Assembly (NCBI GenBank): GCA_030704615.1
Contig: CM060733.1
Coordinates: forward strand, 4,774,001-4,838,000
Length of the DNA: 64,000 bases
DNA from: Takakia lepidozioides
Lineage: Eukaryota > Plantae > Bryophyta
Direction of reading: 5' to 3'
Part shown: positions 38,220 through 64,000 of the stretch, in pieces
Layout: every line of letters starts with the position of its first letter
Numbering within the stretch: position 1 is the first letter of the stretch
Made by a program: the position numbers and the translations under genes
The notes under the pieces: model-generated
Told to the model about the DNA's origin: nothing
The model's input: only the letters and a program-made list of their open reading frames with translations
Database searches by the model: none

Positions 38220-41200
38220 TTATTCTTGAAAACATGCCGAGGAGTGAACCTCCACAATATGTTCTCCGCCCAAGGTTGCATTGTCTTCATTGTCTGACTG
38301 TTGATTGGCCTCATCCAAATTTGCTCGTGCTTTCTCCGCCTCCACCGCGGTAATTTTCTTAGAGCTATTACGTGTCGTGTTTTTTCTGGCGGACATTGTC
38401 CAAACAACAGAGTTAATGTGAATCCACTGAAGGGGATCATCTGGATTGAACTCCCAAACTTTGGACCAACAAGTTTAGTACCTGTCCAAATCAGAAGGGC
38501 TACCTCCTTTCTTGGGTCTCCACCATTCGACGTGAACCTTCTTAAAATTCCTGGATCCTCTTTCGCGGACCACATCCGATATTGCCATCCCCATCCAAAC
38601 TGAAAACGTCACAGTATCTGCTGGTCGAACCAAGACGAAGAATCCGTTCTCAATGTCCTTGAACGGATTTAGAGGTTGCTTCGGTCTATCACACCGGGGG
38701 CCAAAATACGGCTCCATGACTTCATCTTCTTCCGACAGATCATCCTCTGCAGGTGTATGGATTCCGGCTCTGTGGTGGTTGATAGCCCACTTGGTTGAGG
38801 GCCAAAAACCCTCTTTAAGCGCGATTGAATGTCGTGATTAGAATGGGAAGATCAAGTTCTGCAAGGATTGCTTCCCAGTATTGATCATACTGTATCATGA
38901 TGTCACGATAATGATCGTCAAGCAACATCCCCTTCTTCCATAACTCCCTGTATTTTTTAATTCCAGTTTTGATAAAAGACTGTTTATCAAATGAGTCATC
39001 TCCCACATCCCAAATTGGTGTTTTTTTTACAGCCCTGGGTTAAACTGCAACAGGCAACTTTGGAGATCCATCGGGATTCGACTTCCACATCTTCACCGCA
39101 CTTTTTTTGGGGAGCCACTCAGAATCAGTAACAAACTTCTTAAACTTCATGACAGGCCAACCATCTTCATCTACATAGAATCGAAATACATGCATTTTTG
39201 TTTGTCCAACTAAAGCCTCTTTTCCATCGAGAATGCAACCGTCCACATACGCCTTGAAATCTGGCACCTCTTGAATGATTTGAGGAATAAATTGTAGATC
39301 TTGAGAGATCATAAAAAACCGCATAAGATCGGAGAGAACGTAGGTGTTGTTTTGCTTTAGCTTCTTCGATAAATAACTGAAGAATCCGTCGATGTCCTCA
39401 TGGGTATGGCCAACCATTGAAATCCCATCTGAATCTCCTCAAACACTCCTCTCGCAGTTAGGAGCGATAGAAAAGCCAGCATCCACCTGTTTTTGTTTTC
39501 CTTTACGCAGTTGTCCAACTGCAGGTAAAGTCTTCGCGGAAGTGGGACATTTCTTTTTTTCTTCTCCTTATCGCCGAAAGGTTTCAGGACGTCGAGACAC
39601 TTCGATTTACCCTTCATGAGAGATTCGAAAAAAGAATTCTGAGGTGGGTGGTCAAAGATGTTACGACTTTCGCGGCAAGAGGGCTTCTCTAGTTGGTGGA
39701 GGCATCTTGCTAGAGAGCCAATCATGAAGTTCGGGTCTCCCGGCCAGAAGTCCAGAGAGTACTGTCCGTAGGCTCCGTCCCCGTGGCCGTGGGTGACCAT
39801 GCCGGTTAGCGATATTGGAAGCTAACCTAAGCCGGAGACCATCTTGTTCGTCGTCTACAACCTTGGAATAGCTGTATCCGATGATCCATCTTGTCATGAA
39901 TGATGCAGAGGAACTCGGACGGCATCATAGCTTACTCATTCCTCCAGCTGTGATAGAGTCTCCTGCAAGACTCCTGAAGCCTGAGGTGCTTATCAAGTGC
40001 TTTCTTGTGTGAGGCCTGCTCATCGTTACGTTTGACCGACTTCTTGATTAGGTCTTTGAGCATCTCATAGTCTGTGCATTTGCAAACGCTACCATCTTTT
40101 CAACCTCGACATTGGGAAAAATCCGTTGTCTGATCTGCTAACGGCTGCCTGGGAGATAGGCTTCAACCCACATATTTTTATTCGCCTGCAAGACAGGCAG
40201 GGGGAAAACCTCGCGCGATCACCTGAGCTTTATAGAGAGAGGTCTGATACATTGCGTGGAAGCAAAACAGGGAGTCCCAAAAATATAGAATCGGAAAGTG
40301 GTAAAAAGAAGAACTGACCTCATTACACTCCTCACGAATTTTTTTCCAGTTCAGTTCAGGTCGCAGAACTCGAAGAGTATCTCTCCTTCCGTCTCCAATA
40401 CACCGGGTCTTATGAGCCGAAAAGAGCGGGAATTTCCGTTTAAATAAAATCGCATTACGTTTCCTTCAGCTTGACGAGTTTGGTGGACGGGCCGTTTTAA
40501 CTCCGGATTCCCGTTCCAACGATGTAACCACACCCTCTTCTGCTCTTTTGTGTAGTTTTTTGTATTCCATGTAGGTTGAACGACCGATTCCGTGAATTGT
40601 CCACCAAGCTATCTATCTCAACACATCAACACCCTCAAGGTTATGTAGGCCTTTGTCGAAACACCCCGTCGATTTCGATGAAGTCTTTTGGGAACATCAA
40701 AACCGAGCTCTCTCCGTTCGTCGTAAGAGGATCCCCAATAAGCGGTCGGGTAGCGAGTGTTTTTTCTCCAGTCGAATATTTGGCAACACTGTAAATTGCA
40801 ACATTGTTTGCTGCTGATTTCTCGAACAACCTGCAGAGAGAGGCGAGTATTTGTCTTTTTGGAATCGTCTTTTTCGGATCTTTTTTTGGTCTGTTGAAAT
40901 GCCGGTATGTTGCTTTTTTCGCACCTTTCTCGTTGTGACCAATATCTGTTTGTTCCCGGCTATTGATGAAACTATGAAGCTCATGTGACAATGTCCGACC
41001 ACTATCAATCAACCGAGTCTACGTCAATGGCCAGTTCACGAGACACATGAGATTGGCCGAACCGCCATTCAAAAATTGTACGGGAGATGCCTCCATCTCG
41101 GGAAAACTCTCTGAAGAAGCACTTGCTCCAAGCAGTGGCCTTCCACTGCCTCAAGTAATCCTTCTAGAGTGTCCTTGGGCATGGTCATGGTAATTTTGTA

Positions 41201-41600
41201 ATGATGAAGTTGTTTCTCCAGCACCTTGTTTGCACGAGCTTCAATCTGCAGGGGTATATAAGCATGGGTTAGAGTCCATGCGTGGGAAGATATTCTCAAA
41301 ATTTCAAGCAAAGAAAGTCCTAAAAACTACCTGGCTCCAGTAGGTGGCTTTGTGCAACCATGTATCGAGAACTTGGTCGTTGCAGGGTTTGATGTGCCCA
41401 GTGTTCTCATCTCTTTTACCCCTAGAGAAGCAGTAGGTATCCTTGACGGTTGGGTCGGAATTCCCAATCTCCAACCATTTCACTTTCTGGTCTGCTTCTT
41501 CCGCTGCAGTTGACAACTGGTGAAGCTTTTCTTGTGTCATCTCCGGTTTGGTGTTATTGTTCCAGTGGATCCTCACCTGGTTAAGGAACTCGAGACCAAA
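38220..41600 (-). pseudogene. DDD transposase of the Sola1-like (DNCxxENKN / GHTHEDID) type, spliced and frameshifted
   Basis: LCIIHDKMDH (~39890), LYLQLDNCVKENKNRWMLAFL (~39500), VGHTHEDIDGFFSYLSKKL (~39400). N-terminal Cys-rich CCxxxCC and CxIAWWTIHGIGRSTY blocks. Introns 40186-40318 and ~41250-41330. Confidence 0.8.
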
Positions 41601-42829
41601 ATCAGGGTCAGTTATTGAGGAGCAGAATGACAGAAGAGAAACCCAGATGAAGTGGAGAGGCTCTCAATATTGAAAGGAGTACAAAGGGAAGAATGAACGT
41701 AAAACAGACAGTCCTGAAGATCAGCGAGCCAGAGCAACTGAGAGGGAAAAAATGGCATGCGTGCACAGGGCAGGCTCGTATACGGATTGTCAAACAGTAC
41801 AAGGTCAACGTGTTCACATTACAATTGTTCGTTTGGAGTGTCATGGATCGACAAATTGTCGCACTGGATATGCTCTTTCGTGTAATCTTGTGGCTATTAT
41901 GTGTCCTCCAGAGCATAAATTCAAGTAGGAGTCTGAAATCCTCCGAACATTAATGGGTCCATAAGTTATTGCGGCCAATGCGAATAACTAACTGATTCGA
42001 GATCTGGAATTTGACATCCAAAGCACCAGAGAAGCAGCAAATCCAATGTTGAATTAATGATACAAGATAAGGAATAGTCGGCGACGAAAGTGGCCGCCTC
42101 TTAAGGCCATTGTGATGAGCCAGTGGCCATCTATGGCAAGGTGACATTAAGTAGCGGCAATGAACGTGGGGCCGTAGATGAGGTGTAGGTAGAGAAAACA
42201 TGAGACCGATCAAATCCTAGATGCGCGTCCCGACACCTCATTATTGAACCTATGAATAATATTTTATCATTGGAAGAAATAAGAGCCTTCGCGGATGAAA
42301 CAGACGTATACTGGATGAGATGACTGCCCTAGTCGATGATTCAACTCCCCTCATGGATGAGCGCCATCACAGGAACCCGCAATAATTCCAGGGTGTTCAC
42401 TTTATGAAGGCGTCAGATTGCCGTGCCGTAACGCTCTGGACAAACTAGTGGAGTCCATTCATTACTGACAATCATGTCACATCATTGATTGTACCTGCAT
42501 AAATTTAGGGGTCGTCAGCGAATCGTTGGGAAACATCCCGCCTTTCATTCATCCATGCATTGAGGCCACAAACCGTAGGATGCGACATAACGCCGACGGT
42601 TGAGATCACAGGTGGTAAGGCATATAAGGAGGAGTGACCGAAAGGAGTCTCCTTTTGCATTCATTTGATACACGCGGAAGCCCTGTTCAATTTTGGACTC
42701 AAGGAAGAGGTGCGAGAGAGAGCGGCTGAGCGAGAGAGGCAGAGATGTGCAGATAGGACATGTTCATGACCGGTTGAGTGTCAGTTTGTCAGCACGGAGG
42801 TGCCACTAGTTGCTGGGGAAAGTGCCGGT

Positions 42830-44310
42830 ATGAGCACTAGCGATACTAGCGGGTATACGAGACGAGGTGTGCGGTTTAGGCCACCTTCACCTCCTGTGTC
42901 TTCTACGGAAGGTTCTAATTCGGATTGTGAATCAGGAGGACTCGCACCGGCGGTGCAAGTTGTTTCCTTGCCATTGTTGTGGGACACAATGGAGGAGATG
43001 TATGGAGCCACCAAGGGGCCACGAAGGTACTCTGGGGCGGTGGGCACCATCGAGTTGGATGACTTTATCCAAGAGTTTGATAGTTGGTGTGACTTGCAGC
43101 AAATGCGCAATCCACAATTGTTTACGCCTTTTTATGGCATGGAAGGGGCTGTTTCAGCACCTTGAGGGACCGCCCATGGATGATTACCATGAGTTTAGGC
43201 GGGGGCACGATGCTGAGATCAAGGAGTGGAGGATGTACTGGTCACCCGACTATGTCTCCATCATTAGAGGCACTAGAGGCACAAGAGCAGCAGCTACACC
43301 GGCAGCTGCACCAGTAGCAGCAGCTTCCACGAGCAGTAGTGGGACTAGTGGTACAGCAACTACGACGTCCACCCAAGCTACTGTTGCACCAGCACCATGT
43401 GGCCATGCCTGCCTTCAACCCTGTTGTGGAGTTCTTCGAAGAGTTGAGAAGGAACTACCAAGGGGTGAGGACAGAGAAGTTGAGGAGCTTGCAAGAGTTC
43501 CAACGGAAGCCTACTGAGAGTTTGAGGGAGGCTTTCACTCGCATAAGGCGCTTGATAAATGTAACCCAAGGGGTTACGGAGGCTCAGGCAGTCCAATTCT
43601 GGTACGGGATATTGGACAAGGAGCTGAGGAGAAGGGTGCGGGATGCAACTCTCTTACAAGCGGTCCAACCCACCTTAGCAAATGTGTTTTTGCTGGCAGA
43701 GTGGATAGAGCTCAACATGGTGGAGGAACGAGTGGACATGGTGGGATTTGCTAAGGAGGCACCACGGGGTAGTGGTGCTCCTAGCCAGCCACGACCTCAA
43801 CGTGCTCAAGGCAACAAAGGGGCTCAGGTGAAGCCCAGGGAAGGGCAGAGAGGACCTCAGATATAGGGGTCTCTCCCTTCATTTGCTAGCCAACAACGGG
43901 CGGATGTGGTGTGCTGGACATGTGGAGGACCCCATGTCAAGAAGGATTGCCCAGAGGGAGGCAATGGTGTGGCACCGGCACAGCCTGCACAGTTGGAGTG
44001 TGGGCATTGTGGCAAGTACGGGCATGGAGAGGCCCAGTGCTATGGTTTGCATCCTGAGTTGTGCCCAGGCCAGTTCCAAGGGAACAATGGTGGCCGGGGG
44101 CGAGGTGGAGCAGCCCAGAGAGGACGAGGTGGCCAGGCACGAGGTGCATGCCAAAGGCAAGCTCAACATGGCCACAGCTCAGGTGGTACCGGCTCCAAGG
44201 CCGGATGGTCCACCCCTGCTCCTGAGGGAGTAGACATAGGAGGCATGGGATTCATGTGCGGGGCAGCACTACCACTACCACTATGGGTGGGGCACCACTA
44301 CCACTGGTGA
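42830..44310 (+). pseudogene. Gag with two zinc knuckles
   Basis: LDDFIQEFDSWCD; FQRKPTESLREAFTRI; CWTCGGPHVKKDC and CGHCGKYGHGEAQC. Several frameshifts. Confidence 0.85.
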
Positions 44311-44986
44311 GGGGTGCCACAACCACTACCACTGTGGGTGGGGCAGCACTACCACTGTGCAAGTGGAGTCAGCAGCGGCAGTGACTCGAGGAGCGGCACG
44401 AATTCTTGAGCCACGGGGTGTAGAGGTGGAGGTGGATCCACAACGTGGGGAGGCAAGCCGTCAGGCCAGGCTTCCTCAGTCATTCACATTGGCGGAGACA
44501 GTGTCGACGCCATCCATGGCACCTAGTTCTCGCCCGATTGTTACCGAGGCGGAGATTACTATGCCATTGGGGAGAGCTACACGGGCAGCACCACTACCTA
44601 GTGTTGCTAAGGCTACGACAGCTAGTGTGCTGCTGGGGGCGGCCACATCTGTGTGTCAGGCTCCATTGTTCTCGGCTACCATGATTGCGACGCCGGGGGC
44701 AAGACTAGCTAAGGTGTTCAGGCTGGCAACGACGCTCTGTGAGAGTGGGGTGGTTACTTCATCTTTTGCGGAGATAGTGGGAGGTGTAGTGCCGGAGGGA
44801 TTCTCGGATGTGAGGGTCAAGACTGCCACGGCGGCGCCATGGCAAGCTGCAGCTGCCAGGTTGATGGAGCTGCCAGCTAGGCCAGCCATTGAGCGCGCCA
44901 TGGTGACACCTGGAGTTGTCATGTTAGACAACCAGGATGACATTTTCTGTTTGAGTGGACCGGCAGGCAAGAGGTACCGGCCACTG

Positions 44987-45300
44987 CGGGTCTTGTTGGA
45001 CTCGGGAGTTCAGCCATGATGCTGGGCAGAGCTGTTATTGCGGGCTTGGGCCTCACGGAGGCGGATATGGAGCCGTGCCCTTTCCAGATACAGACATCTC
45101 TGGGAGGATCAGAGCAGGCTCGGGGCATGACACTGCGTGAGCTGGCTATCAGACTACAGCCGGATCATCCTACAGATGGCTCAGTGATGAGAGCCAAGGC
45201 CATTGTGACAGACGCGGTCTCGTACGATGTCCTTGTTGGTGGGGGCAGTGTTGTACCCCATGGGCTTCACCCTGGATTTTTGGGAGAAGTCAGCTTCCTA
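44987..45300 (+). pseudogene. Aspartic protease domain
   Basis: VLLDSG active site, followed after frameshifts by YDVLVG. Confidence 0.8.
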
Positions 45301-45712
45301 TAGGCCTGGATGGCAGTCAGGGGAGGGCCGGCGTTTGCAGCTCCCTGTGACGTTCATAGGAGGAGTTGCGGTTGCCCAACGAAGCAAGATGCCGACACTG
45401 GCAGCATTCACAGCTGCAGTGAGTTGGCCTGGAGAGTTGCTTGAGGGCAACGCTCATTCAGAGGATGTGTCACCTCCGGGAGAGCAGGATGACATGTATG
45501 GTATGGCGGAGTTGCCTGCCATGGTTGCTCACACTCCATTGTGGGGCTCGAGCAAGGATTTGCAGCGGGTTGCAGATCGACATGTGCAACAAGCCTGGGA
45601 AGAGGCTTTTATACCGTCAGGAAAGGATGACAGTGCGGGGATTGCACCAGGACCACCTCAGTTGTCACCATTGGACACCACACCGATCGTGTGGCAGTGT
45701 CCAAATGAAGGC

Positions 45713-46660
45713 ATTTGCCTTCTGGACTTGTTTGGCGGGATCAGCACCGGATTGGCTGTTGTTCTACATGTAGGTATACGAGTTCGGCATTACTTGTATG
45801 TGGAGAGGGATGAGACTGCACGACGCATCGCACTCCGTCATGTTGCTCAGTTGGTGGAGCACTACCCTGAGTTGTTGCCGGTGTCTGCGGTTCGTGGATA
45901 TCAGCAGGCCTTGCCAGCAGACATTTCTTTGCTGGGGGCGCAAGATTTAGAGCGGGTTGGCTCCATTGATTTGGTAGTGGCAGGTTGGCCCTGCCAAGGG
46001 CATTCATCAGCCGGGCATGGCAATGGATTGCGAGACTCGAGGTCGGGTCTGTTTTGGGAGATGGTGCGGGTTTTGCGCCACTTACAGCTTCATTAAGGTG
46101 TATCTCCAGCATACATCTTGGAGAATGTGCCACTGATGGGCGATTCTCAGGCCAGGATGATGGCCAGTGTGCATCAAGTCTGGTCATGGCTTGGGTCAGC
46201 AGTGTTGCTGGATGCAGCTGCAGTGGGGTCACGGGCTCATCGTCCACGGTTATGGTGGACTAACTTGATGCCACCCGCACTGCTCAAGCGTGCATTTGAT
46301 GGGGTGCAACGGCCAATACACCTCACAGTGGATAGCATTTTGGACACAGGCAGGCAGTATCAACGTGTGAGACACGATGACCGTTCGCCTTTGGCAGTGG
46401 TCAACAAGGTGGGTCAACCACGAGCAGAACTACCTACACTGCTCAGCTCCCCAGGATTGCATGTTTTCCGGGATAGTGGACCTGGCCTCCTGTGGATGCT
46501 CAGTTGCAGCAGTTAGTGGAGCCTAATGTTGACGAGCGAGAGCGGGCTATGGGTTTTTCCACTGGGACCACGGCGGTGCCTTCTCTTTCTGAGGCATCAC
46601 GTCGTCAGGTATTGGGGCAAGCAATGGATCTAAATTGCTTGACCTGGATTATCAGCTTGG
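45713..46660 (+). pseudogene. DNMT3-like C5-cytosine DNA methyltransferase domain inside pol
   Basis: Motif I LDLFGG, II YVERD, III ADIS, IV LVVAGWPCQG, VI YILENV, VIII AHRPRLWWTN, IX/X ERAMGF..T..RRQVLGQAMD. One in-frame TAA (46094) and one frameshift (~46495). Confidence 0.93.
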
Positions 46661-47164
46661 CTATGGCTGAGCAACGTAGAGTGCGGAGTGCACTTCCCTT
46701 GACGGTCTCTCTGCCTACCGAGACGGTACAGGCAGTGAGTGGGGGCGAGCCGGTAAGGACCACGGGGTGTAGACATCCATGGCACATGTGGGAGGTGCTC
46801 GAGGTTCAGAGGGAGTTGGCAGCCAAGGCGGCTGTGATGGCTGAGGTTAGGGATTCTTCTCGGGTTGAGGAGGTCCTCAAGGATGAGATGATGGGGCAGG
46901 ATGAGGCCTTGTCATTGACTGAGCAGGCAGGGAGTACTGCTCAAGAGGTTGCGGCATAGCAACCACGAGACGCGTCTCCTACCTCTAAGTCTGCTGGACT
47001 TAAGGTTGCAGTTACGGAGGATAATTGGGAGCCTGACATTGGACCCATTGTCGCTGGAGGAGAGAGATGACGTATACGGCGGTTCTTGAGGGCTTACAGA
47101 GAATTGCTTTGCCTTCAGTTTGAAGGATTTGGGAGCACTGAAGGGTTAGGAGATTTGTATTGAG

Positions 47165-48400
47165 TTGGCTACGGACACGCCAATCTTTCGGAGACCCTAT
47201 AGATACAGTGACATGGAGAGGTCTTTGATTCAGATGAGGACTCAAGATCTCTGGGAGGCTGGTTTGGTGGAGCTCTCTGATGGAGAGTATGCTTCAACCA
47301 CGGTGATGCCAGCCAAGAAGGATGTCTATGGCAATTGGACGGAGAGACGTATGTGCGGTGACTACCGGCCTGTAAATCGTCAGACCAAGTCCGATAAGTA
47401 TGCCATGCCCACACCTGAGGAGATCTTTGATGCCATTGGGTATGCCAAGGTCTTTAGCACTTTGGACTTGCGGTCCGGATATCACCAGTTGCCGATCAAG
47501 GAGGCGGACAAGCAGAAGACGGCATTCTGGGGGATCAATGAGCACGGGAAGGATTGCATATATCAGTGGCGATTCTTACCATTCGGGCTTAAGAACGCTC
47601 ATGCAGAGTTCCAAAGAGTTATGGATAAGATTCTAGCAGGGGTAGACTTTTCTCGGTGCTACATAGATGACATCATTATCTTTAGTGCTACGGTGGAGGA
47701 GCACGAGAGACATCTTCAGGTAGTGTTTGAGCGTTTGAGAGCGCACAGATTGAAATTACATCCAGGGAAGTGCAAGTTCTTCCACAACCAGATTGAGTAT
47801 CTAGGCCACATGATATATCCTGGAGGATTGGGGGTGCAGCAGACTAAGGTAGAGGCCATCGCACAGATTCCACGTCCCACGGATGTAAGCCGAGTTCGAG
47901 CTTTCATGGGGTTGGCAAACTACTATAGATGGTTTGTCAAGGGATTTAATGCTATTGCAAAAGCTCTAACCAAGCTGACCAAGGTAGACCAGGAGTGGTA
48001 GCGGGAAGATGAGCAAGAGCGAGCTTTTCAGGAGCTCAAGGCGAGGTTGACCTCGGCGCCGATCTTGAGACGACCTATCAGGGGGCGTCTCTTTCAGGTG
48101 CATACAGATTGGAGCATGTTGGGACTTGGAGTGGTGCTCACATAGGTGGATGATGAGGGAAGAGAGTTCGTAATGGCTTATGCTAGCCACTCAAACAATG
48201 CTGCAGAGTCTAAGTATAGCTCATATGAGGGGGAGTGCTTAGCTGCAGTGTGGGCCGTGGCACACTTTAGGTGCTATCTATACGGCAATCTCTTCACCCT
48301 TGTCACGAATCACCAGCCACTCAAGTGGTTGATGGAGTCAGACAAGCTTACGGGGAAGCTTGCATGGTGGGCTCTGATACTCCAGGAGTATGACTTTTAG
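47165..48400 (+). pseudogene. Reverse transcriptase and RNase H
   Basis: RMCGDYRPVN, FSTLDLRSGYHQ, LPFGLKNA, CYIDDIII, YLGH; RNase H HTDWS..GLGVVL, YSSYEGECLAAVWAV, TNHQPL. In-frame TAG codons. Confidence 0.95.
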
Positions 48401-48829
48401 GTTGTGCATCGACCGGGTTTGGTCAATAGGGATGAGGATGGATTGAGTCGCAATCCATGCACGAGCCAGCAGGATGACACTGGAGCTCGGTGGCATGGTG
48501 AGACGGACGAGGAGATGGTGTCGGGATGGCATGCATCTGCCTTTTTGTGTATCTTGGCATCGGGAGGTCAGGTTGGATCTACAACAGGGATGACTGTAGA
48601 TGGAGTGTCTGAGGACCCTGAGGCTAGTGATGAGTCAGGTGGTGCCAGAGATATACATGAGGATTCGGTTGTGTTGGACTACCTCCGCACTGGAGACACG
48701 GCAGCTAGTGTGACTGCCAAGGAGAGGGATTGGATCCTACAACGAGCCAAGAGGTTCAAGTGGGAGGAGACACACTTGCTTCGAGTGTGGGAGGATGGTC
48801 GGGTGAGGATTGTGCCTCACCCAACACAG

Positions 48830-50080
48830 CGTGCATGGTTAGTGCGGCATGCCCATGAGGAGTTGGGGCATTTTGGAGTGCGACGCACTCATAGTTTACT
48901 GCAGGGGCAGTATTGGTGGCGTGGTATGCACACAGAGGTGCAACAGTTCGTGGCTAGGTGCATGGTGTATGACAGGGTGCATGCTTCATTCAACGCCCCT
49001 ACACCACAGTTGCATCCATTACCCATCATGGGATTGGGCAACAGGTGGAGTCTTGACTTCGCAGGGCCGTTGCCAGTGCCGATGCGCCACCACAAATATG
49101 TGTTGGTGATGGTGGAGCACTTCTCCAAGTGGATTGAGTTGGTTCCATTGTCTGACAAGGCTACTGAGAGGGCTTGCGTATACATTCCTGGATCGTGTGC
49201 TTAGCCGATTCGGTGCTCCAGTTGAGGTACTCACGGACCAAATGAGAGAGTTCTTGGGGGAGTTTCAGGCTTTGTGTGATAAAGCCTTGATAGACCACCG
49301 TACCACTTTTTGGGATCATCCTGAGGCCGATGGCTTGGCAGAGAGAGTGGTTCAGACAGTGAAGAGGGGTTTGCGCAAGTATGGCTTGCAAAAGGGACAC
49401 CTAGGAGATTGGGATCTTCAGGTACTTTGGTTAGCCATGGGCTACAGGTTTAGCAAGCAGACATCACTTGCCTCCTTCTCACCATATTTCCTTCTCTTTG
49501 GTCGAGAGCCGGATTTGCCTGCATCTATTTGCAGGGAGGCTGCAGTAGTCCTCAACCTTGATGATCCGGATGTGTGGACACAAGCATGTGCCCAACGGGC
49601 AGAGTTGTTCAAGAGAATCATGCCTATGGCTTTCGAGAATCTTGCTATTGCCCAACATCGAGACACATTGAGGTATGCCACTATACGTGGAGGGGGATAT
49701 CGGCCAGGTGTTCGGCGTTTCCACCCTGGGGACTATGTGTATCTGCAGCAGACAGCGCCTACGACCTTGGATGTCACAGCAGGACGTGTGATTCTAAGGG
49801 TCAAGGAGGTGTTGCCTTCAGGAGTGTTGATTCAAGAGGGTCGAGATGGCATGGTATGGAAGGACCATGTGCGTAATTGTGCGCCATGTCACCTCCCACA
49901 TGTGGATGGGAGGATAGATCCCAACCTTGCAGTGGTACCTGCAAGATTGCGTTGCATGCTATATGGGCATGGTCGTGGTGCCGCCACTATGTTGGTGTGT
50001 GATCGATGCTCAAGAGGTTGGCACATTGGATGCTTGACACCACCTCTTGAGAGGGTTCCTGATGGAGATTGGTCAAGATC
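48830..50080 (+). pseudogene. Integrase (HHCC + DDE) followed by a PHD finger
   Basis: HEELGHFG..CMV(Y/C); SLDFAG, LTDQ, ERVVQTVK; PHD CML(Y)..MLVCDRCSRGWHIGCLTPPLERVPDGDW. Confidence 0.92.
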
Positions 50081-52978: not shown

Positions 52979-53263
52979 ATGTACCCTGCGTATATGCCAG
53001 ATACCCAAGCTTATACACCCGGATCCCCGGAGTATACTCCCATATCACCAGAGTACACTCCCTCAACCCCAGAGTACACTCCGGCATCCCCAAAGTATAC
53101 ACCCTCATCGCCAGGGTATACTCCGGGATCCCCAGAACACTCACCAATAGAATACTTTAGCCACCTAAGACCCGGGTCGGCTGCATTGGCCTCATTTTTG
53201 GCACAGTACACACCTACGTCAACTGTATGTTCCGACCATTCGGAATCATCAGAAATAGATTGA
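52979..53263 (+). CDS. Small protein with RNA Pol II CTD-like heptad repeats (YTPxSPE)
   Basis: YMPDTQA-YTPGSPE-YTPISPE-YTPSTPE-YTPASPK-YTPSSPG-YTPGSPE-HSP; codons vary synonymously between repeats. Confidence 0.65.
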   Translation: MYPAYMPDTQAYTPGSPEYTPISPEYTPSTPEYTPASPKYTPSSPGYTPGSPEHSPIEYFSHLRPGSAALASFLAQYTPTSTVCSDHSESSEID

Positions 53264-53775
53264 TTCTTCACGGGCTCTCAGGAGTGTACTTAAACCAGTT
53301 CAGAATTTCAACGTGGTTCCATCGAATACCCACAATAATCAGTAGGATCACCTTCTGGGGGTGTCCTGAATCACCATGATATAGTCCTTCATCTCAATTT
53401 TAGGCAGACATTTATGATTGTACATTAAACGTCAACGATGTCTCCGTTTTCATTCTTCACTGTTGAATAATAAATTATTCTTCACGATTTTTGAAACCAA
53501 TTTATGAACTTCAGCTTTTGAGATTTCCAGTTTAATTGTGACATTGATTTAGTCCATTCCATTTATTCCATATTGCAGTCACAGTTGAATGTCCCCCTAT
53601 TCCAGCTTAATTGTATGTTAATTTCTTTCAATTCCATATCTTCCCAGTGGGATTCCCATATGTATATTGGCCTGACATCCGTAACATTATGATTTGTCTC
53701 AATCTTCGGCCTTTACTCTCAATCCTGAAATAATGCCATGAGATATCTAATCCAGATAACATAATGTTGTGATCC

Positions 53776-56700
53776 ATGTTCAGTCGTCAATCAAACATAC
53801 CGGCGGATTGCCTGGTTGGTGTATGCAAGGAGATATGTAGGGAGTTCATCTCACCAAAATCGCCAAACTTCAGCATAGACCACGTAGCTTTGTATACTCT
53901 TAACCAGGCGATATCCGAGTGGGGAATAAATCCTGTGGGTGTACCTCCTGACCACCAACTGAAGTTTTCCTGCAAGATTGGAGCGGAGGTGAAGGAGCTT
54001 AATTATGGCTACGTTAAAGATGTTGAGATGGAGTCCGACGTGGAGAATCCAATGATGGTGGTTTTCATATTGGAGGATGGTAGAGCGAAGAAGACGTTTG
54101 GTTTTTCTCTGGAATCTCGTCGCGTTCGCAAGGCAATAATGAAACCAGCTATAAAGATGGGATTCACTTTCCCTGAAAGTGGTGCAGCCCTGACTGCTCA
54201 GGGATTTGTACGAGCTTGGAGCGTTTTCCAAGATGTACTCCATGCGCAGGGAAACATCAACAGAAAACAACGAGACGATGAGGCAGCGAAGGGGGCAAAG
54301 GGTAAAAGGAAACGGAAGTCCACGGCGGGATCCTCTCAGACTGACAATGAAGAGGAGCAGCCAGCCGGCAAAAAGAAAAAGAAAGAAGAGCTCGATATTG
54401 TATTTATGAATGACAACAAGAAGCCAAAGCCTGGCGAAATTTTTGACAAGAAGAAATGCAAGGCGATGAATCAAAGTCTGCAGAATGACTACAAAGACAT
54501 GTTCTCTTTTGGGTTCAACCACATAATATCAATTGACATCTCAAGGATGGAACTTGTTCCAAGAAGCATGGTGTATCGTCCGCTGAATATTAATCACAAA
54601 GATGAAGTCAAAGCCTGTCTGTACCAGTTGCGGGTTCTAGATACGAAACATCTCGTCTATCTGGCGCCGAGGAACAAACAGGTGCCAACCCAGGTGTCTG
54701 CGATGAAACCAAGGCATCAGAAGGATATTAACAATTCAAAATTCTTCGTCATTGGAGGCCAGCACACAATTATGGCTGCAAAGGTATAGTACATCAACGT
54801 TTACCTCGCGCGATCGTGCGTTCTTATATATTCTTCTCTGCTTCTATGATAATCATCTTTCGGATATTTCTTTGCGTTTCCTCATTATCCTTCTCGCGCG
54901 ATCGCGCGTGCTTCTACTAGATGATTATATCAGATGCATCGACGACTTGTTTCATAGAAATGCATAGCATGATAAGCAAGCACGCGTGATCGCGCGTGCT
55001 CCTTTATAGTTCAATTCCATGCCGATGTAACATTTTCCAAATCAGGAACTCGTGGAGGAGATTACTGACCGGGAGCAAAGGGACCACTACGCCGAATGGC
55101 CATCAATTATCCTCTTGTCAGATAGGAATAATCAATTGCTAAAGATTTCCAAGCTCCTGAACGACCCAAATAAAGCCCAAAAATTTGACACAACATTCCC
55201 GGAGAAAGTTGCTCACGCCAGGATGTACTATGAGTTGAGGGGGAAGCCCAGGAAATTCAACGATAACGTTTCCAAATCTGAAACCGTTCAGTGGAAGGTA
55301 ATTATTCGGACTTCCTTTATTGTTTAATGTTTTGTTGTTCATTCACTAGAACTGTGTGTCCCTGTTGTGTGTTGGCCTGACATGTTGTTCCTGTTGACCA
55401 GGAATTTTTGCAAGCCTAACAACTTATATTGGAGATGCTTAGCGTTAAGGAGGCCATGACCTTGGTCATTTGCGATGACGATGTTTGGGAGAAGTGGCAA
55501 AAGGTTTTCAGAGAGTGGGAGAAGGGGAACCTCTTGGACATTAACGGAAAGAAGCATAAGGGTGTACAATCGCAGCTAACAAAACCTGCAGTCTGCAAAC
55601 TCCAGGGATTGAACTGCCTTCAAATGAAGAAGGTTGCGGAAAAGATTTGGACTTGAAGATCTGCGTTCGTGGTCCTTACAAAGGAAAAGACCCCAAGATT
55701 CTATGCCTGTCCGATTACATCGATCGAATAAAGGACGGGCGGTTTATTATCGATGATGTTATGGTGGTATTGGGATATGATGCCAGGAGCAAGCAGCATC
55801 CAGAGCCGTACACAAAAGCAGAATGGCTCGAAGTGAAGAAAAGGTACAAGTTCAACAAGTCGGAGTTCAAGACATTCCGATTGAAACTGGGGGCCAAATA
55901 CATGAAAAGCAAAGTGAACATGAACATGAAGACCGAGAAAGTGAGTGACACTTTCATCAAATACTTGCTTTCATGCAAGAAAAGGGTTGAAGACATGGAG
56001 AAGGAAATGGGCAACCTCAAGGATACATTCAAGTCACATTACCAGTGCATTGGAGGGAAGCAAAGGTTCACGGATGCCAAAACACAGTTGAAAATTGTGA
56101 GAAAGAGGGATTTCGATAACATCGCAATGGTGTTCGTCAACACAGTCTGTGACGATGACTCGACTGTTTTCATGCAAAGAAATTACAAGAATATTTCGAT
56201 AACAGCAGCTGAGCCCCAATGTATTTGTTTTCTTCTCGACGCAGAGGTCCTTTTCCAATCTCGTCTCGTACATAAGGTTTGGCGAGGGGCGGGACAGGTA
56301 TATTCTGCTTCAGGGGTTGTATCTTCCTGGAGAGTTCGACAATCCTTACATGAGCCGGCCAAAGTCATTTTCAATGCCTCTCATGTGCCTTGATTACGTA
56401 TTTCCTGCTATAGCTGCCCAGATTGAGAACCACGAGGAGCACCTGCAGGGAGTGCTGATGTTCAGCCCCATTAAACCAGTGATTAAGGCTCCGGACACTG
56501 AGCTCACGGAACACGAGAAAGACTGTGCCGCTTATGAACACGAATTGCGGGCAGAGTCGAGCGACTACATTGCGTCCTTGTTCTGTGGTGAAGGGATGGC
56601 GGCTGTGAACGTTTTTGGAGGCGTAATGTTAACATCGGCTCTCCACGTAAGCATTTGATTTCCATTTCCATTCTATTTCTATTTCCATTTCCATTTCCGA

Positions 56701-57494
56701 AATAAATCTTTGGAACCTCGCGCGATCACGCGTTCATCCTGTTTACTCCATGGTTGGCATCTTTTGCAGGCTAGGAACGTCCATGTCCTCGATATAAATC
56801 ACAACCTGAAAAAAAAATTATGCGCGAATGAGGTTGCACTAACTACACACTCCTCCACACAGATAAAGAGGACGAAACCGAGGTTGGTGATGACACATTG
56901 GGAGGGCAGGAGACCCACAGGCACAATGGCGAAGGAAATGACGACGACGATGACGATGACGATGACGATGATGATGACAATGAAGACAACGGACAAAGAG
57001 TTCTGGAGATAGAGCAAAACCAGGAAGAAGGTGACGGAAACGAAACATTGGAGAAAAATGATGGACATGAGGGAGGTGAGGATGGCAAGGGCGACTATCA
57101 ACACGATGATGCTATCAACAATTTCTTGGAAGAGGAGACAGAAAAAATTGAGCAAGGCATAAATCCACCAGCTGAACAAGCAGGGAGGGTAGTACCAAAA
57201 GAAAGCCACCATCCACAGGCCCAGACAAATACCCGTGAAGGAGACAAACCCGAGACAATTGTGCTGTCTTCCTCCACTGAAGAAGTGGGGGGAGACAATG
57301 TAAAGGATAACGCTGATTCTAGAGACTTCTTCAATAAGAAGATTTCAGAATTAGACTCAGGGGTGGGATTCAGTCCTGTGGAGGGGGATATGCCATTACG
57401 GATGTCACCATATCAAAGATTAAGCCAACGAGTTACGTCGTTGATGGTCAGGCTTCTAGGGCATTGGTCGGCGATCAAAACTCTGTTGAAGTGA
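53776..57494 (+). pseudogene. Multi-exon gene: basic NLS-like region, ParB/Srx-like domain, degenerate amino-methyltransferase-like region, acidic tail
   Basis: Exons ~53776-54783, 55046-55297, 55402-56646, 56770-~57447. IDISRMEL..YRPLN..H..V.....FFVIGGQHTIMAAK (ParB/Srx-like); LFCGEGMAAVNVFGG..LHARNVHVLDI (SAM-binding-like); poly-D tract at ~56938-56985. Stops and frameshifts present. Confidence 0.55.
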
Positions 57495-57990
57495 GTATTG
57501 CATATTATGAGCTGTACTGACACTTGTAAAGCCCAATTTATAACAAACTTGATATAACATCAGAATCTTTTACCAATGGAACTATTAATCTATTGCACAT
57601 GAATCGAAATTTATACGGCAGTCCAATCATCCGCATTTTCTGTAGATCCGTGAGTCCAATACGAAGAAAGTGACACATACCAGAACAAACGACACACAAC
57701 AACATACAATGAAGAAACAATACGACTTCAGAGTGAGGATATCGTCGCCCAAGGTGGCAGCTTCAGAAACCGCGGGCGATCGCGCGAGGTTACTTATCGG
57801 AGGGGTCGACAAAAACATGCCGGATGGCAAAAAACCCATTGACGGTGGAATTGGCGGCGAAACCTCATCCGACTTGGAGCAAGTGCCGCCAATGCTCGTA
57901 TTTCATTCTCCGCCTTCTGTTTTCCTTTCTGCATTCCATTGCGAAACAATTCCAATGAATTAATAATTATTTCCTAATGGGCAGGATGAT

Positions 57991-58812
57991 ATGATCTATC
58001 CACCACACGACTATTCCCAAGCTGTCCAACCCGCGGATTTCTTTGCTCTTCCAATGGGTCCAAATGGATGTCAGCCCGGATATTATGTCCTGGTTCTGGA
58101 TGTCGGGTTCCTATATGAGGTCTACCTCCAGAATGGGCCAAAAACCCCTCCCGCAACTCAGCCTTGTATCTCTGCTGGAAGATTTAAGTTAGCAATGCGA
58201 CATGAGGTGGGAGACTTCCTCAAATGGGTCGTCAAGAAGTTTTGGGTCATCTTATGGAACACTGGCAAAGAAAAGACTGTCGTGGATTTCAAATCAGCCT
58301 TGTTCGGGAGGAACGCCCACAAGGTCATGCATTACAGTTCCGACCAATGTGTGGAACATAGACTTACTTTCAACACATATTGGCCTACGCTACCTAAGGC
58401 CCCAATCTACTTCAAACGACTTTACGATTTGTTCGTAGACCCCGACTCTAAAGCCTACAGGTCTAACACCCTGCTTATCGACGTCGTTGGGAACATGTAC
58501 AAGTCTTTCATCAATCCTCTGAGCCTGGTCATCTTCCTACCTAAATACGAAGCACTTGTAGATCCATACAAAGATGATTTTTTGATGGGTCATCTGAAGC
58601 CCCACCTGGAGAAGTTGAAGCATTCAAAAATGGACACTTGGGCCTTCAATGAGCAGAACCCTTTTGGAATACCTAAGGATATCTACTTTCAGGATGCTAG
58701 AGTGAAATTCATTAATCGCTAGGACTTTCCATGGCCTAAGAACAAGGAGGAATGGGATGCACATCAAAAGTACCTAGAGGCCCTGGAAGTGGAACATGGA
58801 ATATTAAAGTGA
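57991..58812 (+). CDS. FCP1/SCP (NIF)-like HAD phosphatase domain 1
   Basis: VLVLDVGFL, MRHEVGDFLKW..F.VILWNT, YFKRL, NTLLID..KSFINP. In-frame TAG at 58720, after which the frame stays open to 58812. Confidence 0.75.
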
Positions 58813-58918
58813 CTAGTTTTGAGAATGTATTGGGATTCTGAGGTCATTGAGGTCCTTATCTGTTCATGAGATTCTTCTTTTGTTGATTTACTTAATTGTC
58901 TTTATCACTCATTCACAG

Positions 58919-59637
58919 ATCCGACAGCCTAGATCTCCACCTTTGAGGGGACCTCGCTTGATAATTTTTGACGTTAATGGAGTGCTATGCAAAATAACGA
59001 AGCGCCAGAGCCCAGGACCTGCTCCATGTTTTTCGGAATCTGATTACAGCATTCCTGCTATTGTTGGGTATCGGCAAATCTTTAGACGGAAGATGTACCG
59101 GGAAGTTTGGCAAGAGTTACACAAGCACTTCGTTTTAGGTATCTGGAGCTGCATGGTGATTAAAAACAAACTGTCGTTCTGGATTTGCTCCTACGTGGTC
59201 TTCCACGACCAGCGTTCATCATGTCGCAGGAGGATTGTATCATTTGCCCAAGCAATCTGCACCCAAATTACCGAACGAGACAAGATCAACCTCCTGTGTT
59301 CTTGAAACCACTCCTTAAAGTATGGCAGAGTTCTGAAGGTTTTTACAATCAGAGTAACACTCTGTTGATTGATGATACGGCTTTGAAGTGTTTGCTGAAC
59401 CCTCCTGAATCTTGTCTTCTTCTCAAGTCTTTTGAGAACATCGATGTCGACGATTTCTTCTTTCTCAAACTTAGAGATTTCTTGCTTAGCTTCTTGAAAT
59501 TTGAGAACGTCTCAAGCTTCTTGAAAGCAACGAGAATAGGATTTCCACCTTTGAAAGTTAACGATCCACAGTTCAAGCCTCTTCTTGACTATATTGACAA
59601 TTCACAATATTGTGATTTCCGAGTAAATGATAAGTAA
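58919..59637 (+). pseudogene. FCP1/SCP (NIF)-like HAD phosphatase domain 2
   Basis: LIIFDVNGVL, FVLGIWSC, FIMSQEDC, FLKPLLKVW, NTLLIDDTALKCLLNP. One frameshift near 59165. Confidence 0.85.
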
Positions 59638-61056
59638 ATATTCGCGTCCTACTGTGGATACAGTTTACTATTTAAAATTGATCGTGAAGACCATGGAATT
59701 TCAGTATTTTTCTGATATTCTTTCGCTTTGCATAGAAATTGTTATATGGCCAAACCATATGTAATGGTCAATGGATTCGTTGCTGCTTTATGTCCGTCGA
59801 TTTCTTTTCGGAACCACGCGTGGTCACGCGTGGTTCCAACTCAACTTTGTTGACATATATTTCATTTGCAGGTATGCCCATATCAATATATTCTCCATGC
59901 CACAAATGCATCTCAAATTGGCGAAACAATATCGTCTGGTATTGTTGACGATGTAGAAATGATCAGGCCAGAAGCTTTCCAAGGACCTGACAACTTGTTG
60001 TCTACTCAGGCATCCATTGCTGTTATGGAGAGTGTTTTGAGGCTCAAAATGTCAAAAGGTGAATCCACAGTTAGCAGGGTCGATGATTTAACTGGGGTTG
60101 GCTGCGTAGTGGAGAACGACTCTTAATATCTTGGGGAATCCTCCTCGGAGCCGTCCTTCTCCCAACACTTTCCACCAGACGCCGTCACGGGGGATCTACA
60201 TGAGTCTACCGAACAATTGGTTGCAACTATCGCTCAACTGCCTCCTCATCATGTCGTAATTCCAAGCGGGTCACCGGATCACGAGGGCTGGACACCTCAG
60301 CTGCTGAGAAGTCACGTGATTTATTTCTATTTCATCCATGCGTTGTATTGTTACCGTGTTTATGTTCATCCTCTGATTTTCTCTCTTTACTCCAGGCCAG
60401 AAAAGCTGCAACGTATAACCTTCCTGTGAAGCGGCAACTTCTGTGGGGTTATATTCTAAGGTAATCCATTTTTTTCTGTTTGAATTCGGTTTAGGATGTG
60501 CAGAAAGAAAGAAACCGAATTCCATTGCCAACCGTCAGCGAGAAGGTTATTGAACTCACTCATTCGCCGACTGAGGTCAGCACACCGACAAGACCGGCAA
60601 ATATTTCTGCACATCCCCAACCCCCCAAAATTCCGGATGGTCCTGTGTCAAGGAAACGTCGTAGATCACAGCAGTCAGCGGCGGTCGTGTCCGACGATGA
60701 AAAAACAGCATCTGACGTTCTGTTATCCCTTCAACATTCACCTGCCTCCAGTGGTAACCCGCCTCAGAATCGGAGGGTAAATCTAGCAAAGGTAATAAGT
60801 ATCTCCTTCACTTGGTTCTCTGTCTTATTGGTTATGGGTTTTTAGTAATCATTACATATATTATTTACATTGTCGACACAACTTTCACAAAGTAACCTCG
60901 CGCGATCGCGTGTGGTTGAAGGAAACACAGAGACTCCCGATTGTGATTTTTTGTTTAAGTCTCAATTGGATGTCGTAATGCTGAAAATATTACCTTAGCA
61001 AAATATTCCATTTGAAAATCAGGGTATAGAAACAAGGTAAACCACAAAACGCAAGT

Positions 61057-61779
61057 ATGTCGTGGCAACACAAACACATGTTGCTGGTACTGAGTGTCAA
61101 TGGACTTCTTTGCTACAGGCCACCTCCTACCGGAGGTGAGTTGTTTAAACAGAGGTTTCACTTAAGGAAAGTAACAATTTGGGTGCTCACAAGACCATTT
61201 GTAGTTCCAAGACGTGGAGTGCTGGAGTTTCTTCGACTTGCATTGACTCATTTTCATGTAGTGATTTGGTCTTGCTCTGAGAGGGATACTGTATTCAAGA
61301 TGTTGGAGTGTTTCGTTCCTCCGAAAATTATGAAACAATTTCGTTTCATATGGTCTGCCGAGCATTGCACAGATACAGCTGGGCATATTAAGCCTGGGAT
61401 GAAATATCTTATTAAAGATATTAAGAGTATTCTCGTAAAATTTAGTGGGAAATAATTTGCTAGGCAGGGGCAAATTCTACTGGTCGACGATGACCCTTCC
61501 AAGGCACTCCGAAACCCAGTGAATATTGGAGTCTTCCCCATCACACTCAAGGAATCAAGCAATTTGGAGGATTTTGTTGACCTCACCAAAGCTTTGTGGC
61601 CTTTTCTCTCTGGCTTGATTGGAGCCCAGTCTGTTGTTGATTACGTCGGCAAGAACTCATGCAAATCTTCCTGCCCTCTGATAGGTCGAAATCACGTCTA
61701 CTGGTCCTGGTTTGGAAGGTTTATTGATGCTTCTGTTTGGCACCCCCCTAAAAAAGATCCCAATTATCTGGGTACGTAG
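61057..61779 (+). pseudogene. FCP1/SCP (NIF)-like HAD phosphatase domain 3 (lacks the nucleophile Asp)
   Basis: LLVLSVNGLL, RRGVLEFL..FHVVIWSCS, FIWSAEHC, IKDI, ILLVDDDPSKALRNP. In-frame TAA at 61453. Confidence 0.85.
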
Positions 61780-63450
61780 TTTATCATTGCTCTATTTTGT
61801 GTGTAGTCCATCAGTTTTACTTCAACTTGCATTTGTATTTTTTCGTTTGTTGACTTCACATGACTTTTGTGAGATCAATGATATTTCAATGATCTTTGTC
61901 TTTTCTTTAACAATTCCCTTCTGTGTTGCCTCCACACAGTTATATTCCAGTGTCCACAATCAAATTCGACAGGAGAAGAAAGAGGAACGGCAGCGTAAGG
62001 CTGAGCGGCGGGACCGCGAGGTTTTACATTTGTCAAGGTCATCAAGTACAGCTACCGGTGAGGTGTCTGGTCATATCTTACATCAATCTCCCATTGTATC
62101 CATCTCCTCGGGTGCACAGAATTCCGCCATCAGTGGTAACCGACGGCGATCTCGAACATATGCGTTGAGTGTGAGCCGTTTGGGAAGCAACTCTGTGTTA
62201 ATGATGAATTAAACTATGGCCGGCCTGTTCATTACACACATACGTTATTTACCTCCGTCAACGTTATGCCAGATCCTTTCGGCTGTAATGTTAGTCATCG
62301 AAGTTTGAGAGAAATCACGCGTGATCGCGCGTGGTTCCTTCATATATCCTCTTGTGGAGCTATCATGGATCAGTAGTGCCATCAGATGTATCAAAACAAG
62401 TTGACTTCATTGTCAGTTTAAGCAATAACAGATCGGGCTGGAGGCTGGAGGTTGGAGGAGAAGAAATTTTCCGATGTTTTTCATATTACGATGGGGAACA
62501 ACTGACACGATCATCGTCTATGACTGAATTCGAGTTCCTATCTCGTAATTCAAGCTCCCACGATGGTCGTCTCATTTGTTCCTGAGCGGATTGTGAAGCT
62601 CTGCTAAAATCTCTCTTCAAATGGATTGAAGTAATTTTGGCGGCTTCGAAATTCCTTCCCTGACCAACTGATGGCCACCTTGTGGTTGATTGAAATCTGG
62701 ATGCACTCGGCTCGTTGTGGTTCTCACTGGTGGTAGAGGCAGAGATCTGTCGCGTGATCACTCGTGGTTCGAAAAGCGGACTTCAGCATCGTCCTGGTTC
62801 TCTAGCTGACTGCCAAAGTGTTATATTACCTCAACAGTGCAACATGTGATTGGTCAGAGTGATGTTTTTCTATGCTCACGAATTCTACAACGAAAATGTT
62901 GTCATTTGAAGATGTGATGATACTGCAGGCATAGGGAGTTACTTCATGTCAGTTACAGCGAGGGAACTCAAGGTATTCAGATAATCCGTCCCGGAATATT
63001 CCACAGCATCATCCTGGATGATTCATTGATGTGTTTTAGAACACGCACTCAAATCATCGAGGCTGATGGTGTCACTTGTTCCCTGGCGGATTGTTCAAGT
63101 ATCTTATAATCCTAGTCTTTAAGTTGTTTGAAGTCATTCTCCCTGCTTGCATAATCCGATCTCCAACAATTGACAACATCCTCGTGGTGTTTTATTTGGT
63201 TCCTATATCCTTCGTTTGGAGATCCATTATTCTTTTGAGGAACACCAACGATTAACATCGCGCGATCACGCGTGCTTTTCTAAGAGCTGACTTGTTCTGA
63301 TGTCCATCATTGCACACCAAAATGGTGTTACGAGGAGGCAAAATGTCAGCAATTGAACGTCAATCTCCAGTGACATCCTCGTCGTTTTCATGTGGACTGG
63401 ACGCCAAAGGAGGAACACCGTCGCTAACAATCTGTGCAAACAATCTCAAC

Positions 63451-63911
63451 AATCATATGTACTCCAAGGTGCTTGATACTGCGTATGTTCATGTAGCTGA
63501 TTTCTATAGGAGTTTTTTTGCTATTCCCATTCCAACAACATCAGGTCCACTGAGACTGCCATATTCCGAAATCGGAATCAGACACCACTTACATGAAACC
63601 ATCAGCTAAGAATGAAATCTCCAGTTCATTCAATCACAGCCCGGAGAAATATCTCAAGCTGCTGGGCAACTACTTGTGGGCCAGGGTGTTTCTCTGGAGT
63701 CGCATACAATGAATCGAAGATCTAGTTGTGAGCTGACATGCAGGTGATGGTTTTATATTGGTCAATGATGGTGGGCCGTGGCTGATACGGGAGTATGAAT
63801 ATGACAGTCTCTGGGGACCTGATACTGTTCGCATGGGAATAGCAAAACGACTACTATACAATTCAGCTACAGGAACAGCAATAGCATCAAACACCTAGCA
63901 GTAAATATGAT
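63451..63911. repeat. Ungapped imperfect inverted repeat (~135 bp arms, ~190 bp spacer)
   Basis: 63468-63567 aligns without gaps to the reverse complement of 63797-63894 at roughly 80% identity; the similarity extends on both sides. Confidence 0.8.
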
Positions 63912-64000
63912 TTTTGACATTGCTTGTGACAGCTCCAATCAGTTAGTTGGTGGTTAGTCAGTTGGAGATTATTTAGTTGGTGATCACTTTACGAGTGCTT

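Follow-up and report, generated by a model that had tools for sequence, protein, structure and literature searches.

A palindrome-marked gene block with FCP1-like domains beside a DUF7869-type transposase relic in Takakia lepidozioides: a plausible but unproven large mobile unit

We analyzed a stretch of 64,000 nt from Takakia lepidozioides (GCA_030704615.1, contig CM060733.1, positions 4,774,001-4,838,000 of the forward strand), which is referred to below as the window and whose positions serve as coordinates throughout. The region under study, 38220-64000, holds the relic of a DNA transposase gene on the minus strand, then a Gypsy-type retroelement, and then a block of plus-strand genes among which a long palindrome recurs. 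A first-pass annotation of this DNA had proposed that the relic and the block belong to a giant DNA transposon whose cargo comprises a mimic of the C-terminal domain (CTD) of RNA polymerase II (Pol II), FCP1-like phosphatases, and a ParB-like protein.

The palindrome is GC-rich and 18-26 bp long, with a 26-nt weight-matrix consensus close to GAAGCACGCGCGATCGCGCGTGCTTC. Its 14-mer core, CGCGCGATCGCGCG, has 16 matches at up to 2 mismatches, all of them at 50591-63272, against 0.01 expected, and the 26-nt weight matrix finds 17 sites of 27-44 bits, all within 50585-63278. The sole copy outside the block lies within the transposase relic, at 40206-40231, where it occupies a putative intron between pieces of the transposase open reading frame (ORF). 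This copy is a half-site scoring 25.8 bits, compared to a maximum of 15.7 in shuffled sequence, while the best remaining site outside the block reaches only 4.4 bits, and the other ~50 kb of the window contains no palindrome by the weight matrix. Since 16 identical consecutive bases are common to this half-site and the site at 56713, it is taken to be truly related to the motif and no coincidence. Counted by a 9-mer of the palindrome, this copy is the one occurrence outside the block, versus 0.05 expected over both strands of the whole window. The earlier observation that one palindrome is found both in the transposase intron and across the block is therefore borne out, and with 17 sites plus the copy at 40206 it is stronger than had been stated.

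The sites follow a consistent pattern of placement. Upstream of the block genes is a palindrome-dense region (50585-52573) with 8 sites in 2 kb, mostly within tandem units of ~646 bp that extend over 50698-52168 and are 83-92% alike. Three more, at 54801, 54889, and 54977, are spaced 88 bp apart within 54784-55045 on the plus strand, which reads as a putative phase-0 GT-AG intron from the three-frame view and a splice scan. Single copies then stand upstream of an acidic low-complexity ORF (56713-56738), about 200-220 bp upstream of the start codon of the first FCP1/SCP-like gene, NIF1 (57767-57792), in front of S/P-rich ORFs (a variant copy, 59811-59836), and about 150 bp upstream of the start codon of the third FCP1/SCP-like gene, NIF3 (60893-60918). 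The last two of the window are at 62312-62337 and 63253-63278, and the array may continue beyond 64000. All 10 sites after 52.5 kb fall outside the plus-strand ORFs of at least 150 aa (counting NIF3 across its stop), and these ORFs occupy about 56% of 52.6-63.3 kb. Two repeats border the array. Between the integrase end of the retroelement and the palindrome-dense region is a tandem repeat of 22/44-bp units containing ACTAGTGG (50269-50456), and after the last palindrome there is an imperfect inverted repeat (63437-63926) with arms of 149 nt that are 77% complementary and 192 nt apart, possibly a foldback or an insertion resembling a miniature inverted-repeat transposable element (MITE).

What the palindrome does at the molecular level bears on how the locus is explained. 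Perfect copies can fold as 11-bp hairpins (-14.1 kcal/mol, z -4.7), and departures from the consensus are mostly CpG-to-TpG/CpA changes, as would be expected of decaying copies. Together with the restriction of copies to non-coding gaps and the multiplication of many of them by tandem duplication of the 646-bp units, these properties would suit an explanation in which the palindromes are small self-propagating or locally duplicating sequences of mini foldback or MITE-like type, or hairpins of transcribed RNA or of DNA, that have built up in the non-coding parts of this neighborhood because they are tolerated there. We regard this explanation as improbable. The arms pair at 78% of positions compared to 75.7% in shuffles, with 38 of 500 shuffles equally high, no conserved flank, target site duplication (TSD), or terminal structure was found around the 26-nt core, and there are no copies in the other ~50 kb of the window even though it is rich in non-coding DNA. 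Because the arms vary independently, paired half-sites in double-stranded DNA for a dimeric protein fit better than a selected hairpin, and the latter was rejected since arm covariation does not stand out from that of shuffles. Helitron 3' hairpins and CACTA subterminal motifs were also considered and dropped, as there is no conserved sequence 3' of the palindromes. Each palindrome contains two ACGCGC/GCGCGT boxes.

An 18-mer of the palindrome returned three single chance sites from a viral collection, and a 20-mer returned 43 loci from metagenomes, nearly all of them GC-rich and none block-like, with a single site each except for one locus with two core matches. The literature yielded no account of the palindrome motif or of DUF7869.

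The block itself spans at least 13 kb and consists mostly of orphan genes with compact spacing. All long ORFs between 52.6 and 62.2 kb lie on the plus strand, in agreement with the same-strand arrangement described previously. Pfam scans covered 67 plus-strand and 53 minus-strand ORFs of the block along with 15 minus-strand ORFs of the transposase region, and among the block ORFs and those added from the transposase region NIF was the sole domain recognized, three times. The first genes of the block are Ser-rich ORFs (52605-53260, plus strand) ending in six YTPxSP(E/K/G) heptads at 53012-53136 that are encoded by a 21-bp tandem repeat of 6 units. All six repeats keep Y1, P3, S5, and P6 of YSPTSPS, the consensus of the Pol II CTD, and the Pfam profile for this repeat, PF05001 (RNA_pol_Rpb1_R), gives E 0.012 and 16.3 bits, under its cut-off of 20.3 bits. 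The CTD-like heptad peptide that had been noted is thus present, with a sub-threshold profile score. The array differs from the Pol II CTD in having just six repeats and in its residues at positions 2 (Thr) and 7 (Glu, Lys, or Gly), and at the sequence level the likeness seems real but modest. An SCP/FCP-fold domain is encoded within ~5 kb of the heptads, and this nearness is suggestive, nothing more. A motif of ~23 aa is duplicated on either side of the heptads (52811-53260, plus strand), as SPIGYF…PGSAALSFFLEQY and SPIEYF…PGSAALASFLAQY, and reads …PGSAAL.FL.QY.

Next on the plus strand is a 338-aa orphan ORF (53773-54786) with Lys-rich stretches resembling nuclear localization signals, followed by ORFs without matches at 55031-55324, 55560-56390, and 56203-56655. 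The orphan ORFs of 55046-56655 are probably exons of the same gene as the 338-aa ORF, joined to it by the putative palindrome-bearing intron. Downstream of these are the acidic low-complexity ORF (56832-57491), which has no early Met, and, between the second and third FCP1/SCP-like genes, the S/P-rich ORFs with a KRRR stretch (59811-60842), which have an in-frame stop at 60124-60126. Word-seeded protein searches under candidate length limits were made with three block ORFs (57967-58719, 53773-54786, and 55560-56390) and found no homologue, and exact-sequence look-ups of two ATG-started block ORFs gave no record.

The 338-aa ORF is the apparent source of the claim that the block carries a ParB/Srx-like gene. 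Its last ~90 aa (about 54520-54783), running from …IISIDISRMELVP… to …FFVIGGQHTIMAAK, contain an …I.I..…R…V..L…GG.H…AAK pattern, and a palindromic site array with such an ORF nearby has a formal likeness to ParB-parS. Unlike ParB-parS, however, the site sequence is unrelated to parS, and the resemblance of the protein is at the level of this motif only. ParB/Srx profiles did not match in Pfam at E up to 10, in NCBIfam at E up to 1, or among PDB sequences at E up to 10, and neither the ParB GxxR motif nor the Srx GGCHR motif is present, with the ORF reading GGQHT and thus having neither the Arg nor the Cys. An AlphaFold2 (AF2) single-sequence model has a predicted local distance difference test score (pLDDT) of 37 overall and ~30 over the ParB-like stretch, which makes it unusable. 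A ParB-like domain would cross the putative splice junction, and the exons were searched singly. The ParB/Srx assignment accordingly could not be upheld.

For the FCP1/SCP-like domains, scores against the Pfam family NIF (PF03031) are E 2.8e-7 for NIF3, which is above the cut-off, 4.7e-4 for NIF2, and 5.8e-3 for NIF1, and all three genes are on the plus strand. NIF1 is intact from its ATG (57991-58719) within an open frame of 251 aa (57967-58719), with LDVGF as motif I and LIDV as motif IV. NIF2 (58823-59634) has motif I as FDVNG, no start Met, and a frame change in an A-run near 59160. NIF3, whose ATG is at 61057 in the region 60893-61776, has motif I as LSVNG and is interrupted in frame by a stop at 61453-61455. 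An exhaustive phmmer search, with NIF1 as sole query and a library without the source genome's own NIF1, returned 37 relatives at about 30% identity, with no self match and none above 30%. All of the top ten carry NIF when scanned, and among 20 matches that were looked up, those named by their sources are land-plant "FCP1 homology domain-containing" proteins. A profile of the family matches UBLCP1, SCP1, and CTDNEP1 in the PDB at 1e-10 to 1e-6. The AF2 model of NIF1 has a pLDDT of 87.1 and a predicted template modeling score (pTM) of 0.84, and the top 32 Foldseek matches to this model in the PDB comprise CTDNEP1, SCP1-3, TIM50, UBLCP1, and FCP1, at E down to 2e-8.

While family and fold thus support the three FCP1/SCP-like domains reported in the first-pass annotation, their designation as phosphatases does not stand up as well. 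Unlike SCP/FCP1 phosphatases, none of the three has the catalytic DxDxT, and NIF3 is also without the nucleophile Asp. The plant subfamily that they resemble, whose members are named by their sources as S. pombe C1271.03c-like or "TIM50", natively has the consensus LLVLDVNGLL at the DxDxT position, so that Asn stands where the second catalytic Asp would be. The window's domains are like this DVNG subfamily in fold, in the motifs LLVLDVNGLL, VGIWSS, and LLIDDSPYKA..NP, in the Asn replacement, and in the NIF1-NIF2 tandem, which matches the two-domain arrangement. They differ from it in having only ~25-30% identity, in the Gly at +2 and the DV for DD of NIF1, in the missing nucleophile of NIF3, and in that two of the three copies are broken. 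Activity is doubtful because the subfamily natively lacks the second catalytic Asp and two of the three NIF domains are broken. We therefore take the NIF domains to be host-derived and divergent, probably without phosphatase activity, and the NIF proteins to be at best phospho-peptide binders. Some members of the DVNG subfamily are without the nucleophile too, for example a Brassica protein (LSPNG), and sources often name these proteins "TIM50", though their activity appears unstudied.

The closest relative of NIF1 is the Sphagnum protein KAH8970694.1, which has two NIF domains in one intronless gene, and NIF1 and NIF2 may form one two-domain protein in the same way. The Sphagnum locus has no palindrome, and the Brassica NIF relative has ordinary gene neighbors, in contrast to the NIF genes here, which lie in a palindrome-marked island. 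These relationships suit an explanation in which the block is made up of lineage-specific host genes, either as a cluster or as one or two long genes with many exons. Divergent FCP1-homology paralogues and disordered nuclear proteins would here be co-regulated by way of a common palindromic cis-element, and the relic of the transposase and the Gypsy element would be neighbors without any relation to them. NIF is a conserved plant host family whose relatives sit among ordinary genes, the two-domain Sphagnum protein mirrors NIF1-NIF2, and the NIF1 frame and its confident fold at ~30% identity imply past purifying selection. The binder of the palindrome could then be a CGCG-box/CAMTA-type protein, which is conceivable given the two ACGCGC/GCGCGT boxes of each palindrome. 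Transposon termini were not seen in the window, as would be anticipated for a host cluster. Nonetheless, we rank this explanation, the strongest of the rivals, somewhat below that of a decayed mobile unit, since it leaves a genuine motif copy inside the transposase relic, stops and frame breaks in several genes, non-NIF ORFs for which the word-seeded and family-library searches gave no homologue, and a CpG content that is not depleted, unlike that of the host genes in the window. The motif is also absent from every other gene in the window.

Compact, intron-poor, same-strand orphan genes with a common upstream motif could also belong to some other large mobile or viral element, such as an endogenous large DNA virus or a Maverick-like element, with hallmark genes past the end of the window, the palindrome as a gene-proximal promoter element, and the DUF7869 relic as incidental. 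Nucleocytoplasmic large DNA viruses commonly carry NIF/CTD-phosphatase-like genes, and NIF-type genes occur as well in marine metagenome contigs with dense orphan genes. Against such an origin, the Pfam scans detected no viral hallmark domain in the block on either strand, scans of the viral collection with the motif and with the 338-aa ORF gave nothing related, the closest kin of the NIF domains belong to the plant host subfamily, and there is at least one putative intron. We find this origin very improbable. The marine contigs (PRJEB4352) encode a distant NIF relative among densely packed, mostly orphan genes on both strands and recur in many samples, and they possibly derive from a large virus or a picoeukaryote.

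The transposase relic occupies 38223-40959 on the minus strand, with its catalytic region at 39043-39821. Minus-strand ORFs of this region match Pfam PF25273 (DUF7869) at E 5.8e-20 and 5.6e-16, which substantiates the DNA transposase that had been called on this strand, now as a DUF7869-type domain. On our reading of its motifs, DUF7869, a eukaryotic family, would be a DDE/DDD transposase domain. The catalytic domain (…LDNC..NKN… / …GHTHEDID…) is in this respect like Sola1 and other DDE/DDD transposons, a likeness drawn through the Pfam match, and the earlier label Sola1-like is a tentative one. Sola elements are known as single-gene elements of a few kb. The gene is broken by a frame break at ~39425, inside the conserved ...EEIQMGF / MVGHTHEDID stretch, where an intron would not fit. 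Immediately past the 3' end of the relic, at 36800-37700, are AT-rich tandem units of ~200 and ~340 bp in which TTTAGGG, the telomere repeat of plants, occurs in short runs.

Between the relic and the block lies the Gypsy-type retroelement (42770-50114, plus strand), with gag zinc knuckles, a C5-cytosine DNA methyltransferase (C5-DNMT) domain, reverse transcriptase (RT), RNase H, integrase, and a PHD finger. RT, RNase H, and integrase are in Gypsy order, confirming the identity previously given to the element separating transposase and block. The C5-DNMT domain (45209-46093) is upstream of RT and the PHD finger is at the C-terminal end of the integrase. The element has several frame breaks and no palindromes, and no pair of long terminal repeats (LTRs) or other terminal repeats flanks 42.7-50.2 kb. 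KnitGypsy-Dnmt3 of Klebsormidium nitens was reported to have DIRS-like rather than LTR repeats (PMC5890265), and the window element is like it in combining a Gypsy-type pol with an embedded C5-DNMT and no conventional LTR pair. This likeness is one of domain make-up alone, and unlike KnitGypsy-Dnmt3 the window element has a C-terminal PHD finger and frame breaks. It extends the rare retroelement class described from Klebsormidium. A second Gypsy fragment, 91-92% identical, is found at 32236-34151 on the minus strand.

Several observations suggest that the relic and the block belong together. Without the retroelement they would be ~3 kb apart and divergent around the motif-dense region. The observed/expected ratio (o/e) of CpG is 0.86 in the relic (38-42 kb) and 0.70-0.88 in the block (50-64 kb), compared to 0.25-0.41 in host gene bodies (10-16 and 20-30 kb) and 0.5-0.6 in the Gypsy element. 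This distribution suggests heavy gene-body CG methylation in the organism and little in the island. The tetranucleotide signature of the relic is closest to that of block segments, by a small margin when CpG words are left out. Taken with the shared palindrome, these features favor the giant-transposon proposal, though its ParB component is unsupported, its transcription-hijacking kit is conjectural, and no terminal inverted repeats (TIRs) or TSDs are seen in the window, so that as a whole it is plausible but unproven.

A number of results weigh against a single mobile unit. No inverted repeat rose above chance, either in the surroundings of the transposase or when 34-38.4 kb was compared to 62-64 kb, and no TSDs were seen, although the element as proposed would extend past the end of the window and its right terminus may lie beyond 64000. 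No second copy of the block was found in the protein, viral, and metagenome collections, and because of this mobility and linkage are unproven. The link between relic and block consists of one half-site, composition, and adjacency. The borders of the Gypsy element are undefined, and contiguity of relic and block before its insertion is an assumption. High CpG o/e may simply reflect no gene-body methylation. No DNA-binding domain was recognized in any block ORF by Pfam scans or a PDB sequence search, and in Sphagnum and Brassica the NIF family is a normal host family with ordinary neighbors and no palindromes.

The explanation that we favor, tentatively and by analogy with VANDAL/VANC, is that the locus is a decayed large mobile unit whose non-coding motif array would be a high-density array of binding sites. 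The motif array and its placement, the identities of the domains, and the breaks are seen directly, whereas the unity of relic and block, the mobility of the unit, the binding of the motif by a protein and the identity of that protein, and any connection to Pol II are inferred. The unit would run from ~38.2 kb to at least 63.3 kb and would have been split by the later insertion of the Gypsy-DNMT element. It would carry the minus-strand DUF7869-type transposase gene and, pointing the other way, at least four fast-evolving genes of nuclear type packed closely on one strand, namely a heptad protein joined or adjacent to the 338-aa orphan, the NIF1-NIF2 tandem, the S/P-rich protein, and NIF3. The NIF genes would have been derived from an ordinary plant host family, and the window copy is in decay, given the frame breaks or stops of the transposase, NIF2, NIF3, and an additional ORF, two of which fall in homopolymer runs and may be assembly errors. 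The palindromes would act as double-stranded half-site pairs for a dimeric sequence-specific protein, either encoded by the element or a host CGCG-box factor. With sites in the tandem repeats upstream, in a putative intron, and in 5' regions, the array would mark the whole unit and control its transcription or chromatin state, as VANC motifs mark VANDAL transposons.

The motifs of VANDAL21 are found only outside coding sequence, in introns and in tandem repeats upstream of genes, and nothing but the transposon carries them so densely (PMC5735166). The locus resembles VANDAL/VANC (PMC5735166) in its locus-unique motif density, in the non-coding placement of the motifs, partly by way of tandem repeats, and in their position beside a transposase and accessory genes. 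The block region is also not CpG-depleted, which is compatible with anti-silencing and not specific to it. VANDAL motifs are 9-mers with a single orientation, in contrast to the long GC-rich palindromes of this locus, whose transposase is DUF7869-type and not from a Mutator-like element (MULE) and whose proposed unit is far larger than a VANDAL element. No VANC homologue was recognized in the Pfam scans. The VANC-like idea put forward earlier suits this anatomy well, as the motifs keep to non-coding DNA, upstream tandem repeats and one putative intron among it.

A more specific form of the proposal would have a transposon exceeding 16 kb, not counting the retroelement, with a DUF7869/Sola-like transposase. 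An element-encoded dimeric protein, for which the orphan with the ParB-like motif is the candidate, would bind the 26-bp array, while the heptads and captured, catalytically dead FCP1-homology domains would engage the Pol II CTD code and keep the element transcribed or unmethylated. We give little credence to this version. As far as we know, VANDAL/VANC in Arabidopsis is essentially the only case so far in which a transposon encodes sequence-specific control of its chromatin. If the decayed mobile unit that we favor is real, it would be a second independent case, with a different transposase, a palindromic array, and CTD-related genes, indicating that the strategy is general, and it would offer a compact motif-and-protein pair to test. 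If the block is instead a host cluster, a 26-bp palindrome occurring 17 times in 13 kb and absent nearby would be an unusually clean cis-regulatory array. The DVNG FCP1-homology family, with its non-canonical motif, is itself barely studied.

The TTTAGGG repeats, the Gypsy-DNMT element, and the NIF genes, whose named relatives all come from land plants, mark the window as plant-lineage DNA that is not human. Elsewhere in the window, ORFs at 805-3352 on the minus strand have a SWIM-like CxC…CxH pattern that by eye suggests a MULE/FAR1-type transposase, and they gave no Pfam match at E up to 0.001. An Rfam scan of the window returned 0 matches. HECT exons are found at 10998-12238 by a domain match.

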